The notes beneath the pieces are model-generated. The model was not told where the DNA came from, searched no databases, and was given only the letters and a program-made list of their open reading frames with translations. 64,000 bases of DNA from Macrostomum hystrix (taxonomy: Eukaryota > Animalia > Platyhelminthes). Within the stretch, counting starts at the first letter, position 1; every line of letters begins with the position of its first letter. Where the stretch lies: assembly GCA_950097015.1 (NCBI GenBank), contig CATNEN010000033.1, positions 496,001-560,000 of the forward strand. The letters run 5' to 3'. The position numbers and the translations under genes are program-made. Below are positions 5,144 through 21,614 of the stretch, piece by piece.

Positions 5144-6184
5144 TGTAGCGAGTAGGGAAAATTTTGCAGCAACTCAAGGCTTCTCTTTTTGCAGCAGCTC
5201 ATACAAACTGTCTTTGTTTTGTGAGGCTGTGGGGCTAAAAACCTGTCATATGTCAGTCTAAAGTAGAAATAGAAGTACCATTGTAGCATTCTTAGAACAA
5301 ATTCAAGGAGGAATTGCACGGTTGCTACTAAGCTATTGATCAGTTAAGCGCCTCACCACTCCCAGCAACGCGTACTTCACACTATGTCTTTCAATTTGAG
5401 CAAACATGCCAGAGTGCAATTCTCACTATTGTCATTGATTATCATGGCTTTAATATATAGTTTGCCTTATGCGGGAAATACTATACCTGCCTTCTAAAAA
5501 ATTTGCACAAAACGCGATTGCACGTCCTGTGTTGTTTAGCAGTGTTGTTTAGTAGTCCTTGGTTTTCGCTGCAGAACAGGGCGCGAGCAGCACAAGCAAT
5601 AGTTTATGGCAAGAGAAACTCATATTATGTCTGGCAAGTAAATGGATATGGAAGCTATGAGCTACATGTAGATACATGCAACTTTCTCTGAGAAAATTGT
5701 GTTGTTGACTTGTTGGCTCGGCAGGTGATTTCATCATTTCACAATTTCAACAAAGTTGTAACTTGCTTAAAAAGACGCTTTCTTTTTTAAAATTTTTCGT
5801 AGCCTAGTCGTAGATTTTTATCTGCCATTCCGTCTCCCTTGCTTTCTTGTCCCTCTATCTTTCTGTTAGGGTTATTTTCTTTGTTATGTATTTATCTCAA
5901 TGATGCCACCAAAGTTGTACCAGGTCTTTACTTCTTAAGCTAATTAATTATCTAATTTCACCGAATGCTACCAAAGTTGTTGCAGGGCAAAATTATTAAT
6001 TAAGATCCCACCGCTGTTGACTTAATTTAATAGATTTTTAACTGGCGGTCCTTAAATGGGCCATTCTAACTTCTCAAATGGTAGCGTATGAATTTGCACG
6101 AGCGGTATTTAGGCAACTGTATGCGTCTCCAGTCAATTAGGCGTCCCCGAGATTAGAGTTTAGCAGTTTCCCTTTTGTAATATT

Positions 6185-6795
6185 CTTAGTATAATTCTGA
6201 GTATAATTCTTAGTATAGTTCTGAGTATGGTTCTGTGTATAGTTCTGAGTATCGTTCTGAGTATAGTTCTGAGTATAGTTCTGAGTATGGTTCTGAGTAT
6301 ATTTCTCACTACTATCTTCTCTTAAAATGAATAACACAATGTAACACTTCAAACTTCGAAATTTGCTTTAAAACACACACTTAACACTTTACACTTTACA
6401 CTTTACACAACTTAACACACAACTCACAACTTCAACTTCAACTTCAACTTCAACTTCAACTTCAACTTCAACTTTATTTTCTTGGTAAAAAATTGCAGCT
6501 ATATATATACAGTAAAACTTAGCGTTTGTTTAAATTGAAACATTTTACATTAATATTGTGCATACGGTACAAATTAAAACAAAAGATTTATATATAGTAT
6601 TATTTTTGTTACGGTAAAAAGTTAAAAAAAAATTTTTTGGCGCGCTTTTAATTTTTTTTTATTTTTACGCATTTTATAGAAAACATATTTACAAAGAAAC
6701 TTATTTACAATAATGAAACGAAAACTAAAATACACTGTTATATTTCTCTTAATCACCTTAATCTTAATCTTAATCTTAATCTTAATCTTAATCAT
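6185..6795. repeat. AT-rich low-complexity block with 12-bp (TTCTGAGTATAG), (TTCAAC)n and (TTAATC)n tandem repeats
   Basis: Visible arrays at about 6185-6302, 6428-6474 and 6748-6793. Confidence 0.85.
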
Positions 6796-7399
6796 CTTAG
6801 TCATATAGACACAGCTGTTGCATTGCCAAATCAGTCAAAAACTTGCTTTAGTTTTATTATTTACAAGCAGTCTCTAAGAAAGACATTATTTTTATGTAAA
6901 AAACATGCAAAAAACTAGGTTGCTGCATTTTCTATTATTTTTTGTAGCTAGGTATAGCAATTTAGCAAAAGTAAAAATAGTTCTATTGATTTAGCCATTT
7001 TGCAGATTATGTAAATTATTACACTTGAAAAACTTTAAATCAACAATCAGACATTGTGGTATTATACTAGTCTTTTATGACCATATTTTTTATTTATTAA
7101 TAAAATAAAATAGTTGTACCCATTTCTGTACCTATTAGTTATCTATTAGTTAGCTAGCTCCATGAATTTCTATTTGTAGTGCTTAGCATGGTAAACTCAC
7201 TAAATGATTATATTTGTACTTTTATAGCTCTTTTGAAAACTTAATTGCCAACACAGTTCTTATCATTAGTTTGTTAGAGGATAACAGGCTGTCCTTAAGT
7301 ACTATTGGGATAATTCTTAAGGACACAGTTCTAGTGTCTCTATAGAAAACAGGCATCATTTTCATAGTGTCTCTTCTGGCTGAAGACTGTTTCTCTTGT

Positions 7400-7900
7400 G
7401 CAGCTACATGCTTGACCTTGCTGTTTAGTAACCGATGATGATACTCGTGCAGCCCCTAACTCCACATTGGTATGCTTGATGACAGGCTTGTCCCGAGTGA
7501 CCTCGGGATAAACAGCAAAAGCAGCCCAAAATTCTCAATCAATAAGCTGCTTGAAGTTTGAACATTTCCAAAGTTTGTGAGACTCCTGGCAAAGGGTGTG
7601 CATTCTGTTTAAGTGGTGGCCTGAATCTTGATATTCGACAAAATGGCTCCTTGTTGAACCATTCAATCATGCACAATCTCCATGGCTTCTGTCTGGAACG
7701 CGGCTTCCATCAGCAGCCGCTCTCGCAGCATCCTGTCTGTGCCCATTGAACAGCCAGTGCCAGTACTGTGCCACCATCGGCTCAGGCATATTCTTCTGCA
7801 GTTTTTGCATAAATGCCATGTTCTGCAAAGAAAAAAATAGTCCCCTTGCCTAAACGGCAGTAATCATCTTCCTCCTTTGGGTCACTGCACTCATGCGGCT
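7400..7900 (-). mobile_element. Possible BEL/Pao gag relic (frameshifted)
   Basis: Minus-strand fragments LGKGTIF / FMQKLQKNMPEPMVAQYWHWLF / LRERLLMEAAFQTEAMEIVHD resemble, from memory, a conserved BEL/Pao gag segment. Frameshifts and stops are present. Not verified by search. Confidence 0.35.
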
Positions 7901-8154
7901 TGAGAATGCTGTTAGAATTACTCTAGAGACAGTAGAGAGTAGAAACGTCTTCATCTCCTGATCGCAGTCAGATTTTTTCTTGCATACCTATCAAATGTGT
8001 AGAACCTGATAAAAACTATCTCAAATGGTAAAAATTCTTAACTTTGCTATGAAGTTTTGCTAAATTCGAATATTTGCTGTAGTCAGTGGATTAAGAATTC
8101 GAGATGCCGCGCAGAATGTTTTTATTCTAATCAATCTAATGTTTGTTTTCAGCC

Positions 8155-11100
8155 ATGAGCTTCGGTCGAGGCTTTAGTCGCAGTTTGCTCATCGGCCTGA
8201 CACAGCAGGCAGATGCTCCTGCTACCCCCACTGCTGCTGCTACTGCCTCAGCCTCAGGTGACTCCTCAACCGCTGATGCCTCATCATCTTCAATTGGTCG
8301 GGCCAGGACTTCGGCTCCGGTGCCTCAGGATGCCTCGGGCCCCTGCTTTGCCTTTGGTCGCGGCTCTGGAGCTGCATCTGCTCCCGCTGCTGTTGCTGCT
8401 GGCCCAAGCGGTGACTCCGCTTCCAGGACATCGCCAACCGTGACAACTTTCGGCCGCGGCTCTGTCCCACTTAGTCGGGACGCTTCAACCGGGGCGCCGG
8501 CAGCCGCATTCGGTCGCGGCTTTGGACGCGGCCTGGCTGCCGAAGCTGCAGCTTTGCCAGACTCGTTGAACCGGCTCAGTGTGCAAGACGCCACAGCAGC
8601 AGCCGCTGTGCAGCCTGCTCAGTCGCGACCCGCGCGTCTCAGGCTATCGCAGGTGCAGCGAGTGGGTCCGGCAGACAAGCAGGGCTCGGCTGGCCAGCGC
8701 CTGACACTGGGTGTCAATTTCTTGCGGGTGGAAGGCGCGGACTGCCTGGTGTATCAGTACAGCATCGTTTTCAAACCCAGCGTGGACTCTCGAATGCAGC
8801 GGGACAGGCTTGTCATGTCCATTCAGGACCCGGACTTCCAGAGCGTGCCAGGCCGCGTGCCCTCGGGCAACTCGCTCTACACCAACAGGCCGCTGCCCAG
8901 GGAGTGCGGCGTGTACCAGGCTGCCTCCGGCAACATGCGAGTGTCCATCCAGCTGCAACTGGTTGGCACTGCCACTTTGTCCAGCCTGCCCAGCGTCTAC
9001 AACATAATCTTCCGCTCCATCCAGGCTCGGATGGACCTCATCGAAGTTCGCCGGCATTATTACAACCCGCACGCCAGCGAGAGAGTTCCCGGCCAGCAGA
9101 TGGAGGTGAGTGGCGCAAACTCAAAGTCCTGCTAAAATCACTGGGTCAGCTGTTTGAGTACAAGCCAGACATGTGGGTGTGTGGGTTGGTGCCAGCCATG
9201 TGGGTGTGTGGGTAGGTGCCAGCCATGTGGGTGTGTGGGTTGGTGCCAGACATGTGGGTGTGTGTGTAGATGCAAACAATATGGGTGTTGTTGTGGCTGC
9301 TAGCCAAATAAGCGAGGCGAGGCCAAGTCCAGTTAACCAAGGGTGAGGGTGCTCTCTCGCGTAGCGAGAGCCGTGTATATATATTATTGAACCTCACATG
9401 TACATTGATTACATAAGTACACTATGAGCAAATGTGCACATAGGTCATTCACAACATCATCCCCCCTCCAAAGAGATGACAGGCAACGGGCGGGATGGCA
9501 TAGTTTGAGACATGCATTTAATCAGTTCGTATCGCATGTGATTGCTCTCTCCACAACAGTCACTTGAGTCACATGTCGGTTCACACTCAATCGTGGGTCA
9601 CGACACTGCCGAACCGTTGAGGCGGTGCACGATGCCTCTCAGAACGACGCAGCGGTGGCATTGGTGGCGCCGGGCTTGTCGGCGCACCCGCTGGCTGGGG
9701 TGGCAGCTCACCGTCACCGTCATCGTCGCACCAGCCGCGGCGGTTGTCTGGGATGCAGCGGCTGATGTGCCAGCGACTGCCATCGGTTAGCGTCAGTGTG
9801 TTGCCGTTGCGACCGACGACCGTCATCGGCTCGGAGATGCCGCTGCCGAGTTTGCTTTTCTTCGGTCGGCGTACGCGGACACGACTGCCGACGGTCAATG
9901 CGTCGCTCCGCGGTTGCTGATTCTGCTTGGAAGGTTTCCGGCGACTTTCGGCTCGCTGCTGTTGTTCCTGGACGGTGCGCCGCAGCGCCTGGCTGGGCGC
10001 GGACTCAGGCTCGGCCGGTTGAAGCCGGTCAAGATGCAGGCGAAGCTTCCGCCCTAGCATCATCTCGGCCGGGGTCTTCTTGGTCAGCGCGTGTTCAGCC
10101 GATCGATACGCTAGCAGGAGTTCCTGCACAGCTTGCTTCATGGCCACGCCGTCGGCCAACAGGGCTCGTAGAGAAGACTTGATGAAGCCGTTGAACCTTT
10201 CGACTCCGCCGTTCTGCTGCGGACAATAGAATGGAGTCCGGCGATGCTTGATGCCAAGTGAGCTGAGGAAGTCCGTGAACTCGCTCGACACGAATTGTGG
10301 TCCGTTGTCAGTTGTGATCTCGTCTGGCAGGCCCCAGCGGACGAACAGGCTGCGAAGGGCCTCGATGCAGGCAGTAGAGGTTACGGATGAAGACGCGATG
10401 ATCTCGGGCCACTTGGAGTAGAGGTCGTGGACTACGATGAGGAATCTGTGCGAATTTGGCGCTTCGGTTGCCGGGAGCTCTCCGACGATGTCGACTTGGA
10501 GCTGTCTCCACGGGCCGGCTGGTAGTTCCGTGGTTGACCAGGGCACCTTGATCGGCTTGAACGCCTTCTCCGACAGAATGCAGGCACTGCAGTTCCTCAC
10601 GAATGTCTCCACGTCGCTGTCAATGCGCGGCCACCAGACAGTTTCGCGGCATCGCGCCTTGACCTTCGCCACGCCGAGATGCCCTTGATGCGCCTCCGTC
10701 AACACCAGGTCGCGGAGTGAGGCTGGGATGACCGCACGGCTGCCTCTCGCCAGACAGCGCCCGTCGTTCCACAGGCAGAGCTCGTGCTGCACCTGATGGA
10801 AACCCTTCAGGTCGCTAGGAGTCTCGGTGGGCCATCCGTTGAGCACGAACTGAACGACTCGCTGCAGTTGGTCATCGCTAGCTGTGGCCTCGGCGAGCTG
10901 AGCAACTGAAATAGGCTCGGAGCTCCTGGCAAGCACTAGGTTGATGTCTGACTCAGTTTGACGTTGATCAATCGATTCTTGGCCGATCTTTTTACGATCG
11001 TAGCCGTAGCGGGACAGAAAGTCAGGTTGGACGTTTAGCTTACCAGGAACATACTCGATGTCAAAATCGTAGACGAAGAGTCGCTCACACCAGCGTTGAA

Positions 11101-14100
11101 GCCGAAGAGGCCGCTGGCCGCTTCCGCGTGCTGATAGCAGGGTGGTCAGAGCCTGGTGGTCGGTCAGCAGCTTGAACTTCCGGCCGTACAGCAGAAGGTG
11201 CCAGTGCTCGCAGCTCCAGACGCAGGCCAGGGCCTCCTTCTCCGTCGCGGAGTAACGGCGCTCGGTGTCGGACAGAGCGCGCGAGGCGAAGGCGACTGGA
11301 CGAAGTTGTCCACGCTCGTCAATTTGGCCCAGAGTAGCGCCCAGGGCGACGTCGCTGCTGTCACACGAGACGACTGTTTCGTGGCTCTGATCGAAGAATT
11401 TTAGGCACGGCGCGGATGAGATGAGCCGCTTGACCTCACTGAAGGCTGCCTCGCACTTCTTGTCCCAGTTCCAGGGCACATCCTTGCGCAGGAGTGCTGT
11501 CAGCGGCTCGGCGACATGCGACAGGTTCTTGATGTAGAACTGGAGAAACTTTGCGAAACCGAGGAAGGAAGCAAGCTCGGACGCGTTCGTCGGTGCCTTG
11601 AGTTGCTCTACTGACTCAGCGTGGGACTGAAGCGGCTGGATGCCGGTGGCGCTGATCCGATGTCCGACGAACTGGATCTCTGGAACCTTGAAAACGCACT
11701 TCTTGAGGTTGATGGTGACTCGGTGATGCAGCAGCTTGTCCAGGACTCGGAAAAGGCGTTTGTCATGCTCGGCTTCCGTTGCCGCGTGAACCGCGATGTC
11801 ATCTTGATAGTGCATGACGCCGTCGATGCCTTCCAGGATCTTGCCGACGACCTTCTGGAAGGCCGCCGGAGCTGAGCTGATTCCGAATGGCATTCGCTTG
11901 AATCGGTACAGGCCGGATTCTGTGTGGAAACAGGTCAGGTTCTTGGCGTCTTCGTGCAGCGGCAGTTGCAGGTACGACTGGTTGAGATCAATCCGCGAGA
12001 ACCACTTGGAGTTGGAAAACTCGGTAACTAGGTCGGCGAATGTTGGCAGTGACATCGAGTCTGGGACAATCGCCTTGTTGACACTGCGCAGATCGACGCA
12101 GAGGCGAAGCTTCCCGTCAGACTTCCTGGCGCAAGTGACATTCGATTGCCAATCAGGAACGTCGCCTTCGGCGCGCTCGATGATGCCTTCTTCCTTCCAG
12201 CGATGGATCTCCGCAGCACACTCTTGGCGCAGAGCGAGCGGCAGCCGGCGCATCCGCTGGGCTACCGGCGGCACGGTCGGGTCTACCCTGGGGCGGTGGC
12301 AGAAGCCCTTGATCTCGCCGAGACCGGTGCCTAAAGTGTGGTACTTGGCAGGAATCCAATCTGGCATAGGTGGCATACCTGAAGCCTCGTTACCCGAGCT
12401 AATAGTGAAGATTTGATGGCCGGAAGGTCCGAGGACCTTGCAGTCGAGTTTGTCCATCAGGTCGATGCCCATCAGGTCGTCGCCGTCCATCACAATTGTG
12501 AAGGTGAACAACGGAAGCTGAACGCCGTCGAACTCGACCCTGGCATCGATCTCGCCGGCGACGCTGATACTGGAGCCGTTGTAGGAAAGCAGCTTCTTGT
12601 CGCACGGGCGCAGAGGAATTTTAGATCCGAAGATTTTGCGGCTTGTCTCCATGCTGAGGATGGAGACTTTGGCGGCTGTGTCCACCAGTAACGTGATGCT
12701 GTGACCATTGATTCTTATGCTGGCCCTCTTGTATTGGCCTTTGTGGCTCGACCCGACAGCGAAGATACTCTGCTGTCTGGAGCTGTCTATCTCGACGCCT
12801 TGAATCTTCTTTTGGCCTGAGGTCGGTGCCGTCGTGCTGCTCTTGCACACCTTGGCGAAGTGGTTGAGCCTCCCGCACTTCGTGCACGCCTTGCCTCGTG
12901 CCGCACAGCGCGGATCACTGCCTGTGCGGTGGCCTCGCTGGCCGCAGTGCGAGCAGCAGAACTGGTTCTGCTGACCCGTCTGGCGCTGCTTGGCGTCGTA
13001 GGAAGCTCTCTTAAAGTTGATCTTCTTGATGCTGTCGTCGGCTGCTGTCTTGCCAGTCAGCGACTTCTCACTGTGGACCGCCATTTCCACCTGGGCTGCA
13101 ATTTGGATTGCCCCGCCCAGCGTGAGCTCCTTCTCAAGTAGGAGTCTTTCGCGCACCTTTGAGGACGAGGTGCCAAAGATCAGCTGGTCCAGGATGAGGT
13201 CGTCATGGAGGACTCCAAACTGGCAGTCCTTGGCGGCATGGCGCAGATTTGCCACAAAGGCTTGCACGCCTTCGGCGCTTCGCTGGACGCACTTCCGGAA
13301 TTCGTGCCTCTTGGCATACACGCTCACTGCTGGCTGGAAGTGCTGCTTCAGGAGATCGCATGCCGCTGCTAGTGTTGTCGGAGCCGTTTCCTGGTCAGCC
13401 GAGAGAGTCCGGTAGATTCGTACTCCTTCGCGCCCAAGGCAGTGGGTGAGCAGCGCAATCTTCCTGGCTTCTTGCAGGCTATCGATTCCGGATGCTAGCA
13501 GGTAGGTGTCAAACTCAGCGGCCCAGATTTCCCACGAAACTGCAGGTGTTCCTGGGTTGTCCAGAAATGGTGGAGGTTCTCTGAGGTTCAGGCGTAGTGC
13601 TGGCGCTGTGGCATTCTCAGTGCTACCCATTTCCGATTGGCTCAACTGGCTGACTTGCAGTTGTGAGTGGCGTATGAGTGCGAAAGTCGCTTAGTGGGCC
13701 TGGCTGCCGTGAGTTGATTGGCTGGACTGCGCTGGTTTGGGGGGTTTGCTCTAACCCCTGCTTGCGATGCCAGTGTTGTGGCTGCTAGCCAAATAAGCGA
13801 GGCGAGGCCAAGTCCAGTTAACCAAGGGTGAGGGTGCTCTCTCGCGTAGCGAGAGCCGTGTATATATATTATTGAACCTCACATGTACATTGATTACATA
13901 AGTACACTATGAGCAAATGTGCACATAGGTCATTCACAACAGGTGTGTGGGTAGGTGCTAGCCATGTGGGTGTGTGGGTAGATGCCAACCATGTGGGTGT
14001 GTGGATTGGTGCCAGCCATGTGGGTGTGTGGGTAGGTGCTAGCCATATGGGTGTGTGGGTAGGTTCCAGCCATGTGGGTGTATGTTGAGTGGCCTGTCAT

Positions 14101-17100
14101 GTGGTTAGAAGACAGTAAGTCTATACATCCAAACTTTTTATGAGCTAAATTATCATATTGGCATATTGAGTAGCCAATCAAAGTGAGCTGATATTCGGCA
14201 TTCCCGCAGGTCTGGCCTGGGTACATCACCTCCGTCAGCCACGTTGACGGCGGCCTTCGCCTGATGGTGGAGTCCAGTCACCGGGTCGTTCGGTCCCAGA
14301 CTGTCTATGACCTGTTCCAGTCGCTGGGCACTCGCATCGACGCCATGACGGATGCCATTGTGGGCACCTCGGTTGTAACCCGGTACAACAACAAGATCAT
14401 GCGCGTGGACCAGATTGAAACATCGATGGATTGCACGCACACCTTTGACCGCAATGGCACGCAAATGTCCTTCCTAGACTACTACAAGCAGGCCTATAAC
14501 ATCGAAATTAAGGATCCGCAGCAGCCTATGCTAATCAGCCGTGGCAAGCCAGTCCGAGGAACAGATGGCAAGACCCTGGAGCAGCGGCAGGTCTGTCTGG
14601 TGCCTGAACTGTGCTATGTCACCGGACTCACTGATGAGATGCGGCGCAACTTTCACCTGATGCGCGATTTGGCCAAGTTCACGAAGGTGAGTCGCTGATC
14701 TGTGAATGGAAATGTGGGAATTTTCACATCCTGAGAATGTGCTCAAGCTCTGCTCAAACCCAACTTTTCCAGCTGTCCCCGGACCGCCGGCTTCACGAGC
14801 TGCGCAAATTCGTCCAGACAATCAACAACCGACCGGAGTGCCGCAAACTGCTGGACGCCTGGGGCCTGCGCCTCCTTGAGGAGCCCGACTCCGTGTCGGC
14901 CCGCCGCTTCGTCAACGAGCGGGTCCTGTTTGGCGGCGGCGGCCGCGGCCCGTTCGCTCCGGTGCCAGTTGGCCAGACCAGCGAGTTTAAGAGGGCCCTG
15001 GCTGACAATCGGGTGCTGATTGACGGCCGCCTGTCCAAGTGGCTAGTGGTCTACCCCGCCAGGGAGGAGCGGACCATCGGCTCCTTCTGCGAGACAATGA
15101 TGAAGAAGTGCCGCGCCATGGGCATCACCATCGCCCAGCCAATCACGGTGGCCCTGCAGAATGATTCGACAACAAACTACACTAAGGCCATCAGAGAGAA
15201 CTTCAGCACTGACCTGAATCTGGTCTGCACCGTGTTCACCTCGCAGCGTGAGGAACGCTACAACATGGTCAAGAGGCTCTGCTGCACTGAGCTAGTGGTG
15301 CCCACCCAGTGCCTGTGGACCAAGACCATCGGCGATCCCAAGAAGATGGGCAGCGTGGCCGTTAATGTTGCTGCCCAGATCAACGTCAAGCTGGGAGGCG
15401 CCCTCTGGGGCATCGACATTCCGTACGAGCGGTTCATGGTGAGCTGAACGAGTCCTTAGATTAACTCAACTCACCCAGCCCCTCACCAACTCACCCTGCC
15501 CCTCACCAACTCAGCCAGCCCCTCACCAACTCACCCTGTCCCTCACTAACTCACCCAGTCCCTCACTAACTCACCCAGCCCCTCATCAACTCACCCAGCC
15601 CCTTACCAACTCACCCAGCCCCTCACCAACTTACCCTGCCCCTCACCAACTCACCCAGCCCCTCACTAACTCACCCAGCCCCTCACTAACTCACCCAGCC
15701 CCTCACTAACTCACCCAGCCCCTCGCTAACTCACCCAGCCCCTCACTAACTCATCCAGCCCCTCAATAACTCACCCAGCCCCTCGCTAACTCACCCAGCC
15801 CCTCACCAACTCACCCAGCCCCTCACCAATTCACCCAGCCCCTCACCAATTCACGCATTCCGCTCCCGCAGATGGTGGGTATCGATGTCTACCACGCGGA
15901 CAAGGCGCGCACCAAGTCGGTGACGGGCATTGTGGCCTCAGCGGACCAGGCCTGCACCCGCTGGTACTCTCGGGTGGCCTTCCAGCGCAAAGGCCAGGAG
16001 ATTCTGGACTCTATGCGCGTCATCTTTCAGGCCCAGCTCATCCGCTACATAAACAACGTCGGCGCTCCGCCCAACGTCATCTTCGTGTTCCGCGACGGCG
16101 TCTCAGACAAGCAGGTTGGAGAGGTGCAGCAGCAGGAGGTGCGGGCCATCTACGAGGCGGCCAAGGGCATCGACCCTAACTACAGGCCCAAGCTGGTGTT
16201 TCTGGTGGTCCAGAAGCGAATCAATCAGCGCCTGTTCCTGCGTCAGGGCAACGCCTACTCGAATCCTCCGCCAGGTGAGCAAAACGGCATGCCTAGCCGC
16301 ACTGCTGATTGAGCAGTCAGGTCCTGAGCAGTCAGGTCCTGAGCAGTCAGGTCCTTCTCTGTGCAGGCCCCAGCGTCTGCACCATCTACGTGGCATTAGC
16401 CATTCCATCATTATTCTGAGTAACGCATGCTCTTCCCCGATCGCCCATTGCGCAGTCCACTCAGATCCCAGTGCTGCAGTTCTCACAGATCCCAGTGCGG
16501 CAGTTCTCCCAGATCCCAGTGCGGCAGTTCCCACAGATCCCAGTGCGGCAGTTCTCACAGATCCCAGTGCGGCAGTTCTCCCAGATCCCAGTGCGGCAGT
16601 TCCCCCAGATCCCAGTGCGGCAGTTCTCACAGATCCCAGTGCAGCAGACCTCACAGATCCCAGTGCTGCAGTTCTCCCAGATTTCAGTGCTGCAGTTCTC
16701 CCAGATCCCAGTGCGGCAGTTCCCACAGATCCCAGTGCGGCAATTCTCACAGATCCCAGTGCGGCAGTTCTCACAGATCCCAGTGCGGCAGTTCTCACAG
16801 ATCCCAGTGCGGCAGTTCTCCCAGATCCCAGTGCGGCAGTTCTCACAGATCCCAGTGCGGCAGTTCTCACAGATCCCAGTGCGGCAGTTCTCCCAGATCC
16901 CAGTGCTGCAGTTCTCACAGATCCCAGTGCGGCAGTTCTCACAGATCCCAGTGCGGCAGTTCTCACAGATCCCAGTGCGGCAGTTCTCCCTGATCCCAGT
17001 GCAGCAGACCTCCCAGATCGCAGTGCGGCAGTTCTCCCAGTGCAGCAGACCTCCCAGATCCCAGTGCGGCAGTTCTCCCAGATCCCAGTGCGGCAGTTCT

Positions 17101-17591
17101 CCCAGTGCGGCAGTTCTCCCAGATCCCAGTGCGGCAGTTCTCCCAGTGCGGCAGTTCTCCCAGTGCGGCAGTTCTCCCAGATCCCAGTGCGGCAGTTCTC
17201 AAATCCCAGTGTGGCAGTTCTTCCAGATACCAGTGCGTCAGTTCTCGCAGATCCCTAGTATCGGTAAAGTCGCTCATCCCCGCCCGCAGGCACCGTGCTG
17301 GACCATTCCATCACGCGGCCGGACATGATGGATTTCTTCCTGGTGCCGCAGCACGTGACTCAGGGCACTGTGACGCCCACGCACTATATTGTGGTGGAGT
17401 GCAATGGTGATGTGCCCGTGGACGAGATTCAGCAGCTCACCTTCCGCAGCTGCCATCTTTATTACAACTGGGCCGGCTCCATCCGAGTGCCAGCGCCCTG
17501 CCAGTACGCCCACAAGCTGGTGTACATGGTGGGCCAGAACATTGGCGTGGAGCCCGCAGAGGCCATCTGCGACCGCCTGTTCTACTTGTGA
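8155..17591 (+). CDS. piwi: PIWI-clade Argonaute (5 coding exons, about 932 aa)
   Basis: Exons 8155..9105, 14210..14686, 14773..15438, 15872..16274, 17290..17591, all GT-AG with consistent phases (0,0,0,1). Junctions rebuild hallmark motifs: QQME|VWPGYITSV, PAZ (TRYNNK...SFLDYYKQAYNIEIKDPQQPMLI, LVPELCYVTGL), INVKLGGALW, M|MVGIDVYH, KGQEILD, FRDGVSD, NPPP|GTVLD, QGTVTPTHY, RVPAPCQYAHKL, RLFYL*. The D-E-D-H tetrad is intact and the N-terminus carries GRG motifs. Confidence 0.97.
9289..13941 (-). mobile_element. Full-length Ty3/Gypsy LTR retrotransposon (Mag-like), 4653 bp, in piwi intron 1
   Basis: LTRs 9289..9456 and 13774..13941 are 168 bp each, identical by eye, with TGTTG...CAACA termini. 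5-bp TSD GGTGT (9284..9288, 13942..13946). PBS TGGCATCGCAAGCAGGGGTT (13753..13772) lies 1 nt from the 5' LTR. PPT GGAGGGGGGATGA (9457..9469) abuts the 3' LTR. Confidence 0.97.
9587..13630 (-). CDS. Gag-Pol polyprotein (single ORF, 1347 aa from first ATG)
   Basis: Gag with two CCHC knuckles (CSHCGQRGH...C, CTKCGRLNHFAKVC), protease LVDTAA, RT (LCVDLR, IDLNQSY, MPFGISSAP, YQDD), RNase H (CDSS, EKEALA, TDH, DFLSR), integrase (HQGH..C..C, DDE: QVD, TDNG, GGVERFN). Order PR-RT-RH-IN defines Ty3/Gypsy. No stops or frameshifts. Confidence 0.97.
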   Translation of the reverse strand: MGSTENATAPALRLNLREPPPFLDNPGTPAVSWEIWAAEFDTYLLASGIDSLQEARKIALLTHCLGREGVRIYRTLSADQETAPTTLAAACDLLKQHFQPAVSVYAKRHEFRKCVQRSAEGVQAFVANLRHAAKDCQFGVLHDDLILDQLIFGTSSSKVRERLLLEKELTLGGAIQIAAQVEMAVHSEKSLTGKTAADDSIKKINFKRASYDAKQRQTGQQNQFCCSHCGQRGHRTGSDPRCAARGKACTKCGRLNHFAKVCKSSTTAPTSGQKKIQGVEIDSSRQQSIFAVGSSHKGQYKRASIRINGHSITLLVDTAAKVSILSMETSRKIFGSKIPLRPCDKKLLSYNGSSISVAGEIDARVEFDGVQLPLFTFTIVMDGDDLMGIDLMDKLDCKVLGPSGHQIFTISSGNEASGMPPMPDWIPAKYHTLGTGLGEIKGFCHRPRVDPTVPPVAQRMRRLPLALRQECAAEIHRWKEEGIIERAEGDVPDWQSNVTCARKSDGKLRLCVDLRSVNKAIVPDSMSLPTFADLVTEFSNSKWFSRIDLNQSYLQLPLHEDAKNLTCFHTESGLYRFKRMPFGISSAPAAFQKVVGKILEGIDGVMHYQDDIAVHAATEAEHDKRLFRVLDKLLHHRVTINLKKCVFKVPEIQFVGHRISATGIQPLQSHAESVEQLKAPTNASELASFLGFAKFLQFYIKNLSHVAEPLTALLRKDVPWNWDKKCEAAFSEVKRLISSAPCLKFFDQSHETVVSCDSSDVALGATLGQIDERGQLRPVAFASRALSDTERRYSATEKEALACVWSCEHWHLLLYGRKFKLLTDHQALTTLLSARGSGQRPLRLQRWCERLFVYDFDIEYVPGKLNVQPDFLSRYGYDRKKIGQESIDQRQTESDINLVLARSSEPISVAQLAEATASDDQLQRVVQFVLNGWPTETPSDLKGFHQVQHELCLWNDGRCLARGSRAVIPASLRDLVLTEAHQGHLGVAKVKARCRETVWWPRIDSDVETFVRNCSACILSEKAFKPIKVPWSTTELPAGPWRQLQVDIVGELPATEAPNSHRFLIVVHDLYSKWPEIIASSSVTSTACIEALRSLFVRWGLPDEITTDNGPQFVSSEFTDFLSSLGIKHRRTPFYCPQQNGGVERFNGFIKSSLRALLADGVAMKQAVQELLLAYRSAEHALTKKTPAEMMLGRKLRLHLDRLQPAEPESAPSQALRRTVQEQQQRAESRRKPSKQNQQPRSDALTVGSRVRVRRPKKSKLGSGISEPMTVVGRNGNTLTLTDGSRWHISRCIPDNRRGWCDDDGDGELPPQPAGAPTSPAPPMPPLRRSERHRAPPQRFGSVVTHD
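15464..15853. repeat. 20-bp C-rich minisatellite (AACTCACCCAGCCCCTCACY) filling piwi intron 3
   Basis: About 19 tandem units between the donor at 15439 and the acceptor at 15871. Confidence 0.95.
16450..17250. repeat. 21-bp minisatellite (CAGATCCCAGTGCGGCAGTTCTC-type) in piwi intron 4
   Basis: About 38 units; explains the repetitive ORFs at 16103-17328. Confidence 0.95.
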
Positions 17592-19039
17592 GCATCGCCA
17601 CGGCTGTTTGTGAACACTGGCACTTCTGACATTGTGCAGTGCCTTTTAATAACTTGTTTTTAGCCTTCTGGTCGGGCTAGTTTTATCAGCTTCTATGAAT
17701 GTTCTTTATTGTCGGTTGCTGACACATGGCTGTCACTGAGTTTAGCTTTTTATCGTCGGTGCCGGTTAACAGTAGAACTAACTGCCTCTGACAATTTTTG
17801 TGCTGCACCCGAATGGAGCAATGCAAGCACACGAAACGCAAGAACACGGGCCTACTTTCTGTTGCGCATCTTCTGAAACAAGAAACAAGTCGCCAGCTCT
17901 TCAGACCGTCGAGATATTCAATGTTTCTGGCCGAAGGTCTGATTTTTTCCATAAGCGCTAGTGTATTTCATACTCCCCTATACACGAAATAGCACTGTGC
18001 CTCAGTGCGGCCTTGCCAGGCCTTCAAAATTTATCTGCATGTCACCCAAATGTGCCTGCATCATCTCCGTCTTCGGTGGTCACCTATCTTTATCTAGACG
18101 GACTGCTGGACCTTCAAGAGCTACCACAGGTGGAACTAGGCCACTATGGACACCTTAACGCGAATTTCTCCAATTTCACTGATCAAGCCTAAATACTAGG
18201 CGCAGTTCAACCATAGGACACCATCGCCTAGTCTGCCAACCAACCAGTCTGTTACCACCCAACGCTGTTAGCATTCGGCGCCGCCAAAAAAATTTAGGGG
18301 GGGGGAACTTTGGTATAAAAACGGGCCGCAAAATGGCTTGGTAGTCCTGCTGTTAATGAAAATGATTTATGGTAGCTACTCATTATTTTAAACTAATCAT
18401 TATTGTCATATGTACATAATTATTGTACTGAATTTTTGTCTAAGACGCTGATATTTTCAATGCTTAGTCAGTTGCAAAGTTGAATTTTGCACAAGCGTCC
18501 CTGAGTTCGATTTCGCGGCTAGGCCACATTCATTTGGCGCACCCGAAACTGTATATAATTTCATGTAAGGATTTGTTTCATCTTGTTGTAGGATTACATT
18601 TTTGTGCGTATTCATAATCATTTTATCTTGAACGAATTGCCATTATTTATTTTGTGCACAGATAAAAACTACTATAGCCTTATTCAAATCACTCTGCTTT
18701 TGTGCGTGTACTTTTACCCTTTTGTTTTCTAATTTTTCTAGTCCTCTGTGCGTTCCGCTTTTTCTTGAAGTTCTGATTTTTTATTTGAAACCTTTATCAA
18801 TATTTGCTGAGAAACACGTGTCACTAGCGTAGCTTCCGTACATTTGTTTTGTATCTCATTACTTATACTTTTGTGGTTGATTTATTCCACAACTTTTGCT
18901 ATACAATTAAACTGACGGCTTGTCCTACAGTTCTGATTTCTTTTTGATTTTCTAAAAGTTCAAACTGAGTTGCTTTGGCTTCTGGCTTGTAAATTCATTT
19001 ACTGCTGCAATACCTGCCTCACAGAGTCCAAGGCTCTCT

Positions 19040-19799: not shown

Positions 19800-21614
19800 T
19801 CAGGCGATCTCGATAGCGGCCGCCTTCTCCAGGTGGAGCTCCTTGATCACCTCCTCCTTGAGCATGAACTTTTGCACCTTGCCGGTGACCGTCATGGGGA
19901 ACTCCTTTCTGAACAGCACGTAGCGCGGGATTTTGAAGTGCGCGATCTCGCCCTTGCAGAAGGCCTTCAGCTCGGCCTCAGTCAGCGACATCCCCGGGCG
20001 CAGTCGCAGAACGGCGCAGAGCTCCTCGCCCAATCGCTCGTCGGGCACACCGACAATTTGGGCCTCGGCAATGGCTGGATGGCTGTGCAGGAAGTTCTCT
20101 ATCTCCGCGGGGTAGAGGTTCTCTCCGCCGCGGATCACCATGTCCCGGATGCGGCCCCGGATGTGGCCGTAACCGTCAGCGTCTAGGAAGCCGATGTCGC
20201 CGGTGCGGTACCAGCGGTCCTCGCCGATCACCTCTGTAGTCTTCTTGGCGTCGTTGAAATAGCCGCGCATAACGGCATAGCCGCGGATGCAAATCTCGCC
20301 ACGCTGTCCGATGGGTACCATGCGGCCCTCCGGGTCGGCGATCTTCACCTCCATGTGCGCGGACAGGCGCCCGACAGAGCCCGTTCGCTTCTCTAGACTG
20401 TCGTCCGGCAGGCCCTGGAAAGTGACGGGGCTGTTCTCCGTGGTCCCGTAAGCGATGGTCACCCGCTCCATGTGTAGCTCGGACACGATGCGGCGCATCA
20501 CCTCCACCGGGCAGGGCGAGCCGGCGATGATTCCCGTCCGAAGCGAGCGGAGGTCCCGCTTGGCCAAGTCCGGCTGCGATAGAATATCGATGAACATTGT
20601 CGGCGTGCCGTAGAGCGCCGTGCATCTTTCTGACTCCACGGCGCTCAAGCTGGCTGCAGGTTCGAAGCTTGGCGACGGATAAACGCAGGTGGCGCCGTGC
20701 AGGACGATCTGCAGGTTGCCAAGGCCCATGCCGAAGCAGTGGTAGAACGGCACCTGGACGCAGATGCGGGCCTGATGCTTGTGAAACTCGCAGCGCATGC
20801 CGACAAAATAAGCATTGTTGATGATGTTGTGATGCGTCAGGGCCGCGCCCTTCGGACTGCCGGTGGTGCCGGAGGTGAACTGGATGTTGATCACGTCGTC
20901 CATCTGCAGCCGCTCGGCTAGCCGGCGAAGCTGAGCCTCAGTTGCCGGGTCGGAGCCGCCCGCCTGGCACACCTCGTCGTACAGGTAGGCTCCCGGCCTC
21001 TCCTCCTGACCCATCATGATAAGGTGCGTTAGCGAGGGCATAGCTCGGCCAGACAGAGAGCCCGGCTTTGAAGTGGGCAGCTCCGGGCAGAGGTCGCACA
21101 GCATGCCGTAGTAGTCAGACGTTTTGAAGCTGGGCGCGGAGACCAGCGCTCGGACGCCGACCCGGTTGACGCAGTACTCGAGCTCGTGCGGACGGTAGGC
21201 CGGGTTGATGTTCACCAGCACTAGGCCGGCCTTGGCTGCGGCGAACTGGGTGGTCACCCACTCCGGGCTGTTGGGCCCCCAGATGCCCAGCCTGTCTCCC
21301 GGCTGCAGCCCCAGCGACAAGAAGCCCCTGGCGAGGCGGTCAACATCGGCGCGAAACTCCGCCACAGATCGGCGCAGCGGGCCGCCATCCGGACCACCGA
21401 AGCGGAACACGAAGGCCTCCCGGTCCGGCTGCTTGGCGGCAGCGGCGTCCAGCAGCTGGCCGACTGTCCCACCCATCAGCGGAATGTCAGCCGGGCCGCA
21501 CGCATAGCTCAATCGCTCCGGCAGCAGCGGCATCGGCGGTGGTGACGGCAGCTGCTGGCACGGCCGGAGACCGCTAAGCGACAGGTGACGCAGCCCCTTG
21601 GCTGTAGGGAGCAT
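19800..21614 (-). CDS. ACSF2: Medium-chain acyl-CoA ligase ACSF2-like (AMP-binding ANL enzyme), intronless CDS, 604 aa
   Basis: Motifs IQFTSGTTGSPKG, AYGTTENSP, YRTGD, IRGGENLYPAEIE, FKIPRY, TGKVQKF, plus GDRLGIWGPNS and NPAY..ELEY segments recognisable from animal ACSF2. Basic/hydrophobic N-terminal extension is consistent with a mitochondrial presequence. Confidence 0.9.
   Translation of the reverse strand: MLPTAKGLRHLSLSGLRPCQQLPSPPPMPLLPERLSYACGPADIPLMGGTVGQLLDAAAAKQPDREAFVFRFGGPDGGPLRRSVAEFRADVDRLARGFLSLGLQPGDRLGIWGPNSPEWVTTQFAAAKAGLVLVNINPAYRPHELEYCVNRVGVRALVSAPSFKTSDYYGMLCDLCPELPTSKPGSLSGRAMPSLTHLIMMGQEERPGAYLYDEVCQAGGSDPATEAQLRRLAERLQMDDVINIQFTSGTTGSPKGAALTHHNIINNAYFVGMRCEFHKHQARICVQVPFYHCFGMGLGNLQIVLHGATCVYPSPSFEPAASLSAVESERCTALYGTPTMFIDILSQPDLAKRDLRSLRTGIIAGSPCPVEVMRRIVSELHMERVTIAYGTTENSPVTFQGLPDDSLEKRTGSVGRLSAHMEVKIADPEGRMVPIGQRGEICIRGYAVMRGYFNDAKKTTEVIGEDRWYRTGDIGFLDADGYGHIRGRIRDMVIRGGENLYPAEIENFLHSHPAIAEAQIVGVPDERLGEELCAVLRLRPGMSLTEAELKAFCKGEIAHFKIPRYVLFRKEFPMTVTGKVQKFMLKEEVIKELHLEKAAAIEIA

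Follow-up and report, generated by a model that had tools for sequence, protein, structure and literature searches.

An intact, very young Ty3/Gypsy retrotransposon lying antisense in the first coding intron of a piwi gene of Macrostomum hystrix

Results

The piwi-A gene

Our study examined a stretch of 64,000 nt of the flatworm Macrostomum hystrix (GenBank assembly GCA_950097015.1, contig CATNEN010000033.1, positions 496,001 to 560,000 of the forward strand), which is called the window here and supplies the coordinates used below. It contains a piwi gene, piwi-A, whose first coding intron houses a complete Ty3/Gypsy long terminal repeat (LTR) retrotransposon inserted in antisense orientation. 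The assembly was built from long reads of the inbred line SR1, with haplotigs purged, and comprises 220,453,370 bases in 42 contigs (Wiberg et al. 2023, PMC10468722). The gene is laid out as follows.

8155..9105, plus strand: coding exon 1, 317 amino acids (aa), from the ATG, with an FGRG-rich N-terminus
9106..14209, plus strand: intron 1, 5,104 nt, GTGAGT to CCCGCAG
14210..14686, plus strand: exon 2, PAZ domain (Pfam PAZ, E = 2e-29; best PDB matches are PIWI proteins)
14773..15438, plus strand: exon 3, MID and the start of the Piwi domain
15872..16274, plus strand: exon 4, Piwi domain, with D at 15884-15886, E at 15998-16000 and D at 16094-16096
17290..17591, plus strand: exon 5, end of the Piwi domain, with H at 17511-17513 in QYAHKL and the C-terminus DRLFYL followed by a stop

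The resulting model has five coding exons and encodes 932 aa, with every exon open and GT/AG borders at every intron. Database searches were made exon by exon, rather than with the joined, spliced model, and Pfam recognized a PAZ and a Piwi domain. Among protein structures, the exons matched Ephydatia Piwi-A, Piwi-like 1 and Piwi-like 2 at E = 1e-24 to 1e-34, as against 1e-10 to 1e-15 for Argonaute (AGO) proteins, and Siwi was likewise among the PIWI structures matched far better than AGO. Judged by its predicted protein, piwi-A is a gene of the PIWI clade.

The catalytic DEDH tetrad was placed by equal-length ranges aligned with Siwi (5guh, ungapped) and human Ago2 (hAgo2), and consists of D5, E43 and D75 of exon 4 together with H73 of exon 5. 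These residues match what we take to be the tetrad positions of the references, namely D670, E708, D740 and H874 of Siwi, and D597 and H807 of hAgo2. A PTHY motif was also considered as the site of the catalytic histidine and was rejected, as the aligned ranges point to QYAHKL. The preliminary description of this locus had stated that both splice sites of intron 1 and the whole tetrad were undamaged, and we found GTGAGT, CAG and all four residues in place.

Several FGRG/GRG motifs lie within the first 130 residues of exon 1; N-terminal arginine-glycine motifs are sites for symmetric dimethylation and Tudor binding. A TTTTCAG acceptor is found 2 nt upstream of the ATG (window 8146-8157), which fits either an intron in the 5' untranslated region (UTR) or spliced-leader trans-splicing, a process known in Macrostomum. 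The protein-database search returned no M. hystrix transcript of exon 1, its sole match being a fragment of 55 % identity carried by a Logan contig of 1,054 bp, in which the open frame continues for about six codons beyond the end of the match.

Anatomy of the inserted element

The inserted element and the repeats that surround it are made up of the following parts, with 5' and 3' given in the sense of the element.

9289..13941, minus strand: complete Ty3/Gypsy LTR retrotransposon, 4,653 bp, with identical LTRs, TG..CA ends and a flanking duplication
13774..13941, minus strand: 5' LTR, 168 bp, with a TATA-like TATATAT at LTR position 74
13755..13772, minus strand: primer-binding-site-like stretch TGGCATCGCAAGCAGGGG, a TGG-initiated 18-mer beginning 1 nt past the 5' LTR
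9587..13630, minus strand: gag-pol, coding for 1,347 aa and a stop in one uninterrupted frame that starts from the ATG at 13630
9457..9469, minus strand: polypurine tract GGAGGGGGGATGA, abutting the 3' LTR and identical in 10 of 10 family copies
9289..9456, minus strand: 3' LTR, 168 bp, 100 % identical to the 5' LTR
9284..9288, no strand: target-site duplication GGTGT, left copy
13942..13946, no strand: target-site duplication GGTGT, right copy
9164..9288, no strand: left part of a 27-bp minisatellite (9.6 units overall), the insertion target
13942..14081, no strand: right part of the 27-bp minisatellite

A repeat search of the window paired 9289-9456 with 13774-13941 in direct orientation at 168 bp each and 100 % identity, and the LTR termini read TGTTGT..ACAACA. 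The sole long frame of the element occupies 9587-13645 of the minus strand, and Pfam placed its domains in the order Retrotrans_gag, aspartic protease (residues 309-396), RVT_1 (507-664), RNase H (727-857), integrase zinc domain H2C2 (973-1025) and rve (1045-1138). With the integrase last, this is the Ty3/Gypsy order. The predicted polyprotein also carries a canonical CCHC knuckle, CTKCGRLNHFAKVC, in gag and YQDD in the reverse transcriptase. The claim of an intact and very young Gypsy element was therefore upheld by the identical LTRs, the GGTGT duplication, the polypurine tract and the open gag-pol frame. Neither env nor a chromodomain was detected in the element, the 168-bp LTR holds no heat-shock elements, and an Rfam search of window 6000-19000 returned no family.

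The primer-binding site that had been proposed for the element was only partly substantiated. The TGG-initiated stretch is present 1 nt after the 5' LTR and is unchanged in nine of ten family copies, with one substitution in copy L003; a convincing transfer RNA (tRNA) gene was missing from the matches examined. No tRNA gene was found at three of the four exact matches to a 13-mer of its complement outside the listed element copies (the site on C39 being left out). A 94-nt tRNA-Gln called by ARAGORN overlaps one of eight one-mismatch sites, and was taken as spurious or resembling a short interspersed nuclear element. Each LTR also contains a near-perfect hairpin, GCTCTCGC-TA-GCGAGAGC (9340-9362 and 13825-13847). 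Read in the sense of the element, this hairpin follows closely on the TATA-like box, and it may be a stem of the R region.

Insertion site

The gag-pol frame lies on the minus strand and piwi-A on the plus strand, so the element is antisense to host transcription, as had been described, and its own transcription is directed toward piwi-A exon 1. Within intron 1, 183 nt separate it from the donor and about 265 nt from the acceptor. Without the element and one copy of the duplication the intron would measure 446 nt (5,104 - 4,653 - 5), in agreement with the enlargement from 446 to 5,104 nt that was originally reported. Deleting the element and one GGTGT also restores the regular unit and register of the 27-bp minisatellite, which makes an assembly misjoin very unlikely. 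The same minisatellite is present in intron 1 of a paralogous gene, piwi-B, which is described below. Tandem repeats with a period of 7 or more account for approximately 17.5 % of the window outside the element, in 50 arrays, and many arrays lie within piwi introns, for example a 24-bp array at 16444-17259 in intron 4.

The element family in the genome

The preliminary description had proposed a genome-wide count of the family, and a search of the M. hystrix genome provided it: no fewer than ten copies are full-length and at least 99 % identical, namely the copy in piwi-A and nine others, alongside older fragments at 68-97 % identity elsewhere. There is no mismatch between the two LTRs within any of the ten copies (L001-L010), each is flanked by a different 5-bp duplication, and 11-25 substitutions separate any two copies. 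A full open frame of 1,364-1,367 codons is kept in seven of the ten. The remaining three, L008-L010, form a subfamily with LTRs of 159 bp, the result of a 9-bp deletion near the LTR end; their LTR pairs are identical and their frames interrupted, which suggests mobilization in trans by intact copies. The copies show that the family has moved very recently and repeatedly and that the piwi-A copy is one insertion among many. With identical LTRs in all ten copies, it is also a candidate family for transposition that continues in the SR1 line.

Half of the full-length copies (5/10) lie inside minisatellite arrays, with periods of 14, 15, 23, 27 and 34 bp, and the site in piwi-A therefore fits the family's usual kind of target. 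Compared with the 17.5 % share of tandem repeats, a background taken from one window, this gives a binomial p of 0.019 and hints at a bias of integration or of survival. Among 5.8 billion proteins, the nearest to the gag-pol product was 61 % identical and came from a metagenome contig, and the next, from sea urchin, was 43 % identical. With its nearest relative only 61 % identical, the family is undescribed at the sequence level.

A second, element-free piwi gene

Elsewhere on this contig, at a distance of about 450 kb and in inverted orientation, a locus matches the sequence on both sides of the insertion. This locus is a complete gene, piwi-B (G000:C33:957723-962100, loci L041-L043), with the same five exons and splice sites as piwi-A. 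Comparison with other piwi copies, which had also been proposed, was thereby possible, and piwi-B proved free of the element at intron 1: the intron is 419 nt long and has the same minisatellite minus one unit, with neither an element nor a solo LTR. The earlier statement that every piwi pre-mRNA carries the element consequently does not hold, as a near-identical second gene has an empty intron 1.

The two genes differ at 30 of 2,297 shared coding nt (98.7 % identity), with 23 synonymous vs 5 nonsynonymous codon differences, a pattern that shows past purifying selection on both. Their similarity is limited to window 8657-17685; the flanks are unrelated, the first ~165 residues are strongly diverged, and identity is about 99 % from mid-exon 1 to the 3' end. 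We considered whether piwi-B might be a haplotig and rejected this, given the confined similarity, the differing N-termini and the unrelated flanks, which make piwi-B a paralogue. The sharp boundary at window 8657, within exon 1, suggests gene conversion between older paralogues.

A PF02171 search found at least nine Piwi-domain loci in the genome. Most of them are paired (C33 504k/960k, C30 1319k/2063k, C10 2044k/C2 7485k and C28 630k/C39 310k, plus C11 1628k), and in the two pairs that share a contig (C33 and C30) the members are inverted relative to one another.

Discussion

The insertion in piwi-A is best explained as an ordinary and very recent one by an active Ty3/Gypsy family, not as a regulatory device, and we consider this explanation likely. 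Integrase would have cut the 27-bp minisatellite in intron 1, leaving the 5-bp duplication; the element would then be transcribed within the piwi-A pre-mRNA, removed with the intron and degraded, and the function of piwi-A would be essentially unchanged. Normal splicing and a neutral or near-neutral effect are inferred here from the layout of the locus. The native splice sites are strong and were left untouched by the insertion, and neither AATAAA nor ATTAAA occurs on the plus strand of the element, where fewer than one would be expected by chance. An antisense copy that is far from both splice sites and offers no canonical polyadenylation signal on the piwi strand is most likely spliced out with its intron, and it is in antisense that LTR elements in introns are, as a rule, tolerated. 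LTR elements are also transcriptionally active in a sister species (PMC12801592).

Several observations argue against so uneventful an outcome. The plus strand of the element holds two GTGAGT donors and four acceptor-like sites, and at the level of motifs these outline one cryptic cassette exon (13478-13662 or 13478-13708) with stop codons, so that some mis-splicing through the element is possible. An outgroup fragment from a public sequencing run is 69 % identical to the N-terminal region of piwi-B and 55 % to that of piwi-A, which implies that the element-bearing gene has the derived N-terminus; given this divergence, piwi-A and piwi-B may not be fully redundant.

The same observations feed the view that the insertion damages piwi-A, through a cryptic exon, premature termination or antisense transcription into exon 1, and that this is tolerated thanks to piwi-B, as a first step to the loss of piwi-A. 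The splice-like motifs with their possible stop-containing exon, the heading of the element's transcription toward exon 1 and the more diverged N-terminus of piwi-A are all in keeping with it. However, all exons of piwi-A are open, its splice sites are canonical, canonical polyadenylation signals are absent from the plus strand of the element, and the 23:5 ratio of synonymous to nonsynonymous differences demonstrates past constraint. The insertion is too young for any decay to have accumulated, so that sequence alone cannot decide the matter, and we hold such damage to be improbable. Far less credible still is an artefact of assembly, with a family copy put into the intron by a repeat-induced misjoin. 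The existence of at least ten near-identical copies would favour such an error, as would the making of the assembly from pooled worms and long, noisy reads, with separately assembled haplotypes purged (PMC10468722). Against this stand the precise 5-bp duplication, flanks that are collinear and whose rejoining restores the 27-bp register, and an emptied intron that differs from that of piwi-B by exactly one repeat unit (446 vs 419 nt), none of which a misjoin would create.

Two further proposals, both raised by the preliminary description, would give the insertion a role in silencing. Nuclear PIWI proteins can put repressive chromatin on intronic insertions and so dampen host genes, which is known from somatic cells of the Drosophila ovary. 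The site of the insertion is in the 5' portion of piwi-A; silencing of the intronic copy could accordingly spread to the gene and couple Piwi dosage to the silencing of the element, as negative feedback or as a counter-strategy of the transposon. This we judge very unlikely, as piwi-B, with its empty intron, is an element-free source of almost the same protein that would buffer any loss, and the genome has no fewer than nine Piwi-domain loci. Moreover, the element is one of many scattered insertions of its family, with no sign of piwi targeting or of selection for the site, and Macpiwi1 is cytoplasmic in the sister species (PMC4604429), which sits poorly with self-imposed co-transcriptional silencing. 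We found no report in the literature of a natural transposon in a piwi intron that acts as a regulator or feedback device.

The other proposal is that the locus acts as a trap, in which piwi-A pre-mRNA, presumably made in the germline and stem cells where the piRNA machinery operates, would have part of its 4.6 kb of antisense element RNA turned into antisense PIWI-interacting RNAs (piRNAs) that silence the family. The antisense placement of the element suits this idea. Gonads and neoblasts of M. lignano express Macpiwi1 and Macpiwi2, and ping-pong piRNAs target transposons there (PMC4604429), and in Drosophila one antisense copy of Tirant within a host transcript suffices for piRNA immunity (PMC13226689). 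However, the Drosophila insertions are exonic, in 3' UTRs, and their chimeric RNA is exported (PMC13226689), whereas the piwi-A copy is intronic; entirely enclosed in an intron whose GT and AG are intact, it would not be expected to give rise to such an exported and processed transcript. Neither is the family visibly curbed, with ten copies that have identical LTRs and seven that are open, and its older, degraded fragments (80-97 % identity) elsewhere could supply piRNAs instead. Such a trap is therefore unlikely. A version in which the intronic copy is a working source of piRNAs by way of unspliced or slowly spliced pre-mRNA, while piwi-B keeps Piwi dosage safe, is to our mind a little more doubtful again.

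In its structure the element resembles animal Ty3/Gypsy elements (Metaviridae) of the 'K02A2.6-like' and 'transposon 17.6-like' kinds, with which it shares TG..CA LTRs, a 5-bp duplication, a polypurine tract, a single gag-pol, the CCHC knuckle, YQDD and the Gypsy domain order. It differs from them in its very short LTRs (168 bp) and in having no env and no detected chromodomain. LTR families of M. lignano have heat-shock elements (PMC12801592), which the LTR of the M. hystrix element lacks.

As a retroelement lying antisense in a host transcription unit and so giving antisense element RNA, the insertion is comparable to the Tirant cases in Drosophila (Rafanel et al. 2026, PMC13226689). Those insertions sit in the 3' UTR of host genes and their chimeric RNA is exported and processed, whereas ours is intronic and in a flatworm. 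Tirant insertions set off piRNA immunity de novo in whichever gene they sit (PMC13226689), and the identity of the host being irrelevant there, piwi as the host would add nothing mechanistically.

The two M. hystrix genes can also be likened, by description, to Macpiwi1 and Macpiwi2 of M. lignano, a pair of PIWI-clade paralogues of the same genus with catalytic residues (Zhou et al. 2015, PMC4604429). Identity within the pair is 80 % in M. lignano (PMC4604429), while in M. hystrix it is ~99 % once the first ~165 residues are set aside. In M. lignano, the piRNAs have a 1U and a ping-pong signature, and most of them derive from 436 clusters (PMC4604429). A precedent for a piwi intron whose properties can limit the level of Piwi, and hence transposon control, is intron 4 of Drosophila piwi, which is weakly spliced and thereby restricts the dosage of Piwi (Malone et al. 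2014, PMC4197963). However, that effect arises from a weak polypyrimidine tract, with no transposon involved (PMC4197963), and the splice sites of piwi-A are strong.

As such, the insertion matters little, as young LTR-element insertions in introns are routine in the M. hystrix genome and the host gene looks unharmed. Its value lies in the comparison it affords, for piwi-A and piwi-B form a natural pair of filled and empty paralogues in an inbred line, with 30 coding differences that separate their transcripts. This pair allows one to ask what an intronic insertion does to the output of its host gene, and whether such an insertion seeds piRNAs in a flatworm. Were the piwi-A copy in fact a source of piRNAs, the pair would become a test of whether intronic insertions seed piRNA immunity outside the arthropods.

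Beyond the piwi gene, the window holds an uninterrupted gene for a 604-aa AMP-binding enzyme (acyl-CoA synthetase-like) at 19800-21614 on the minus strand, 2 kb downstream of piwi-A.

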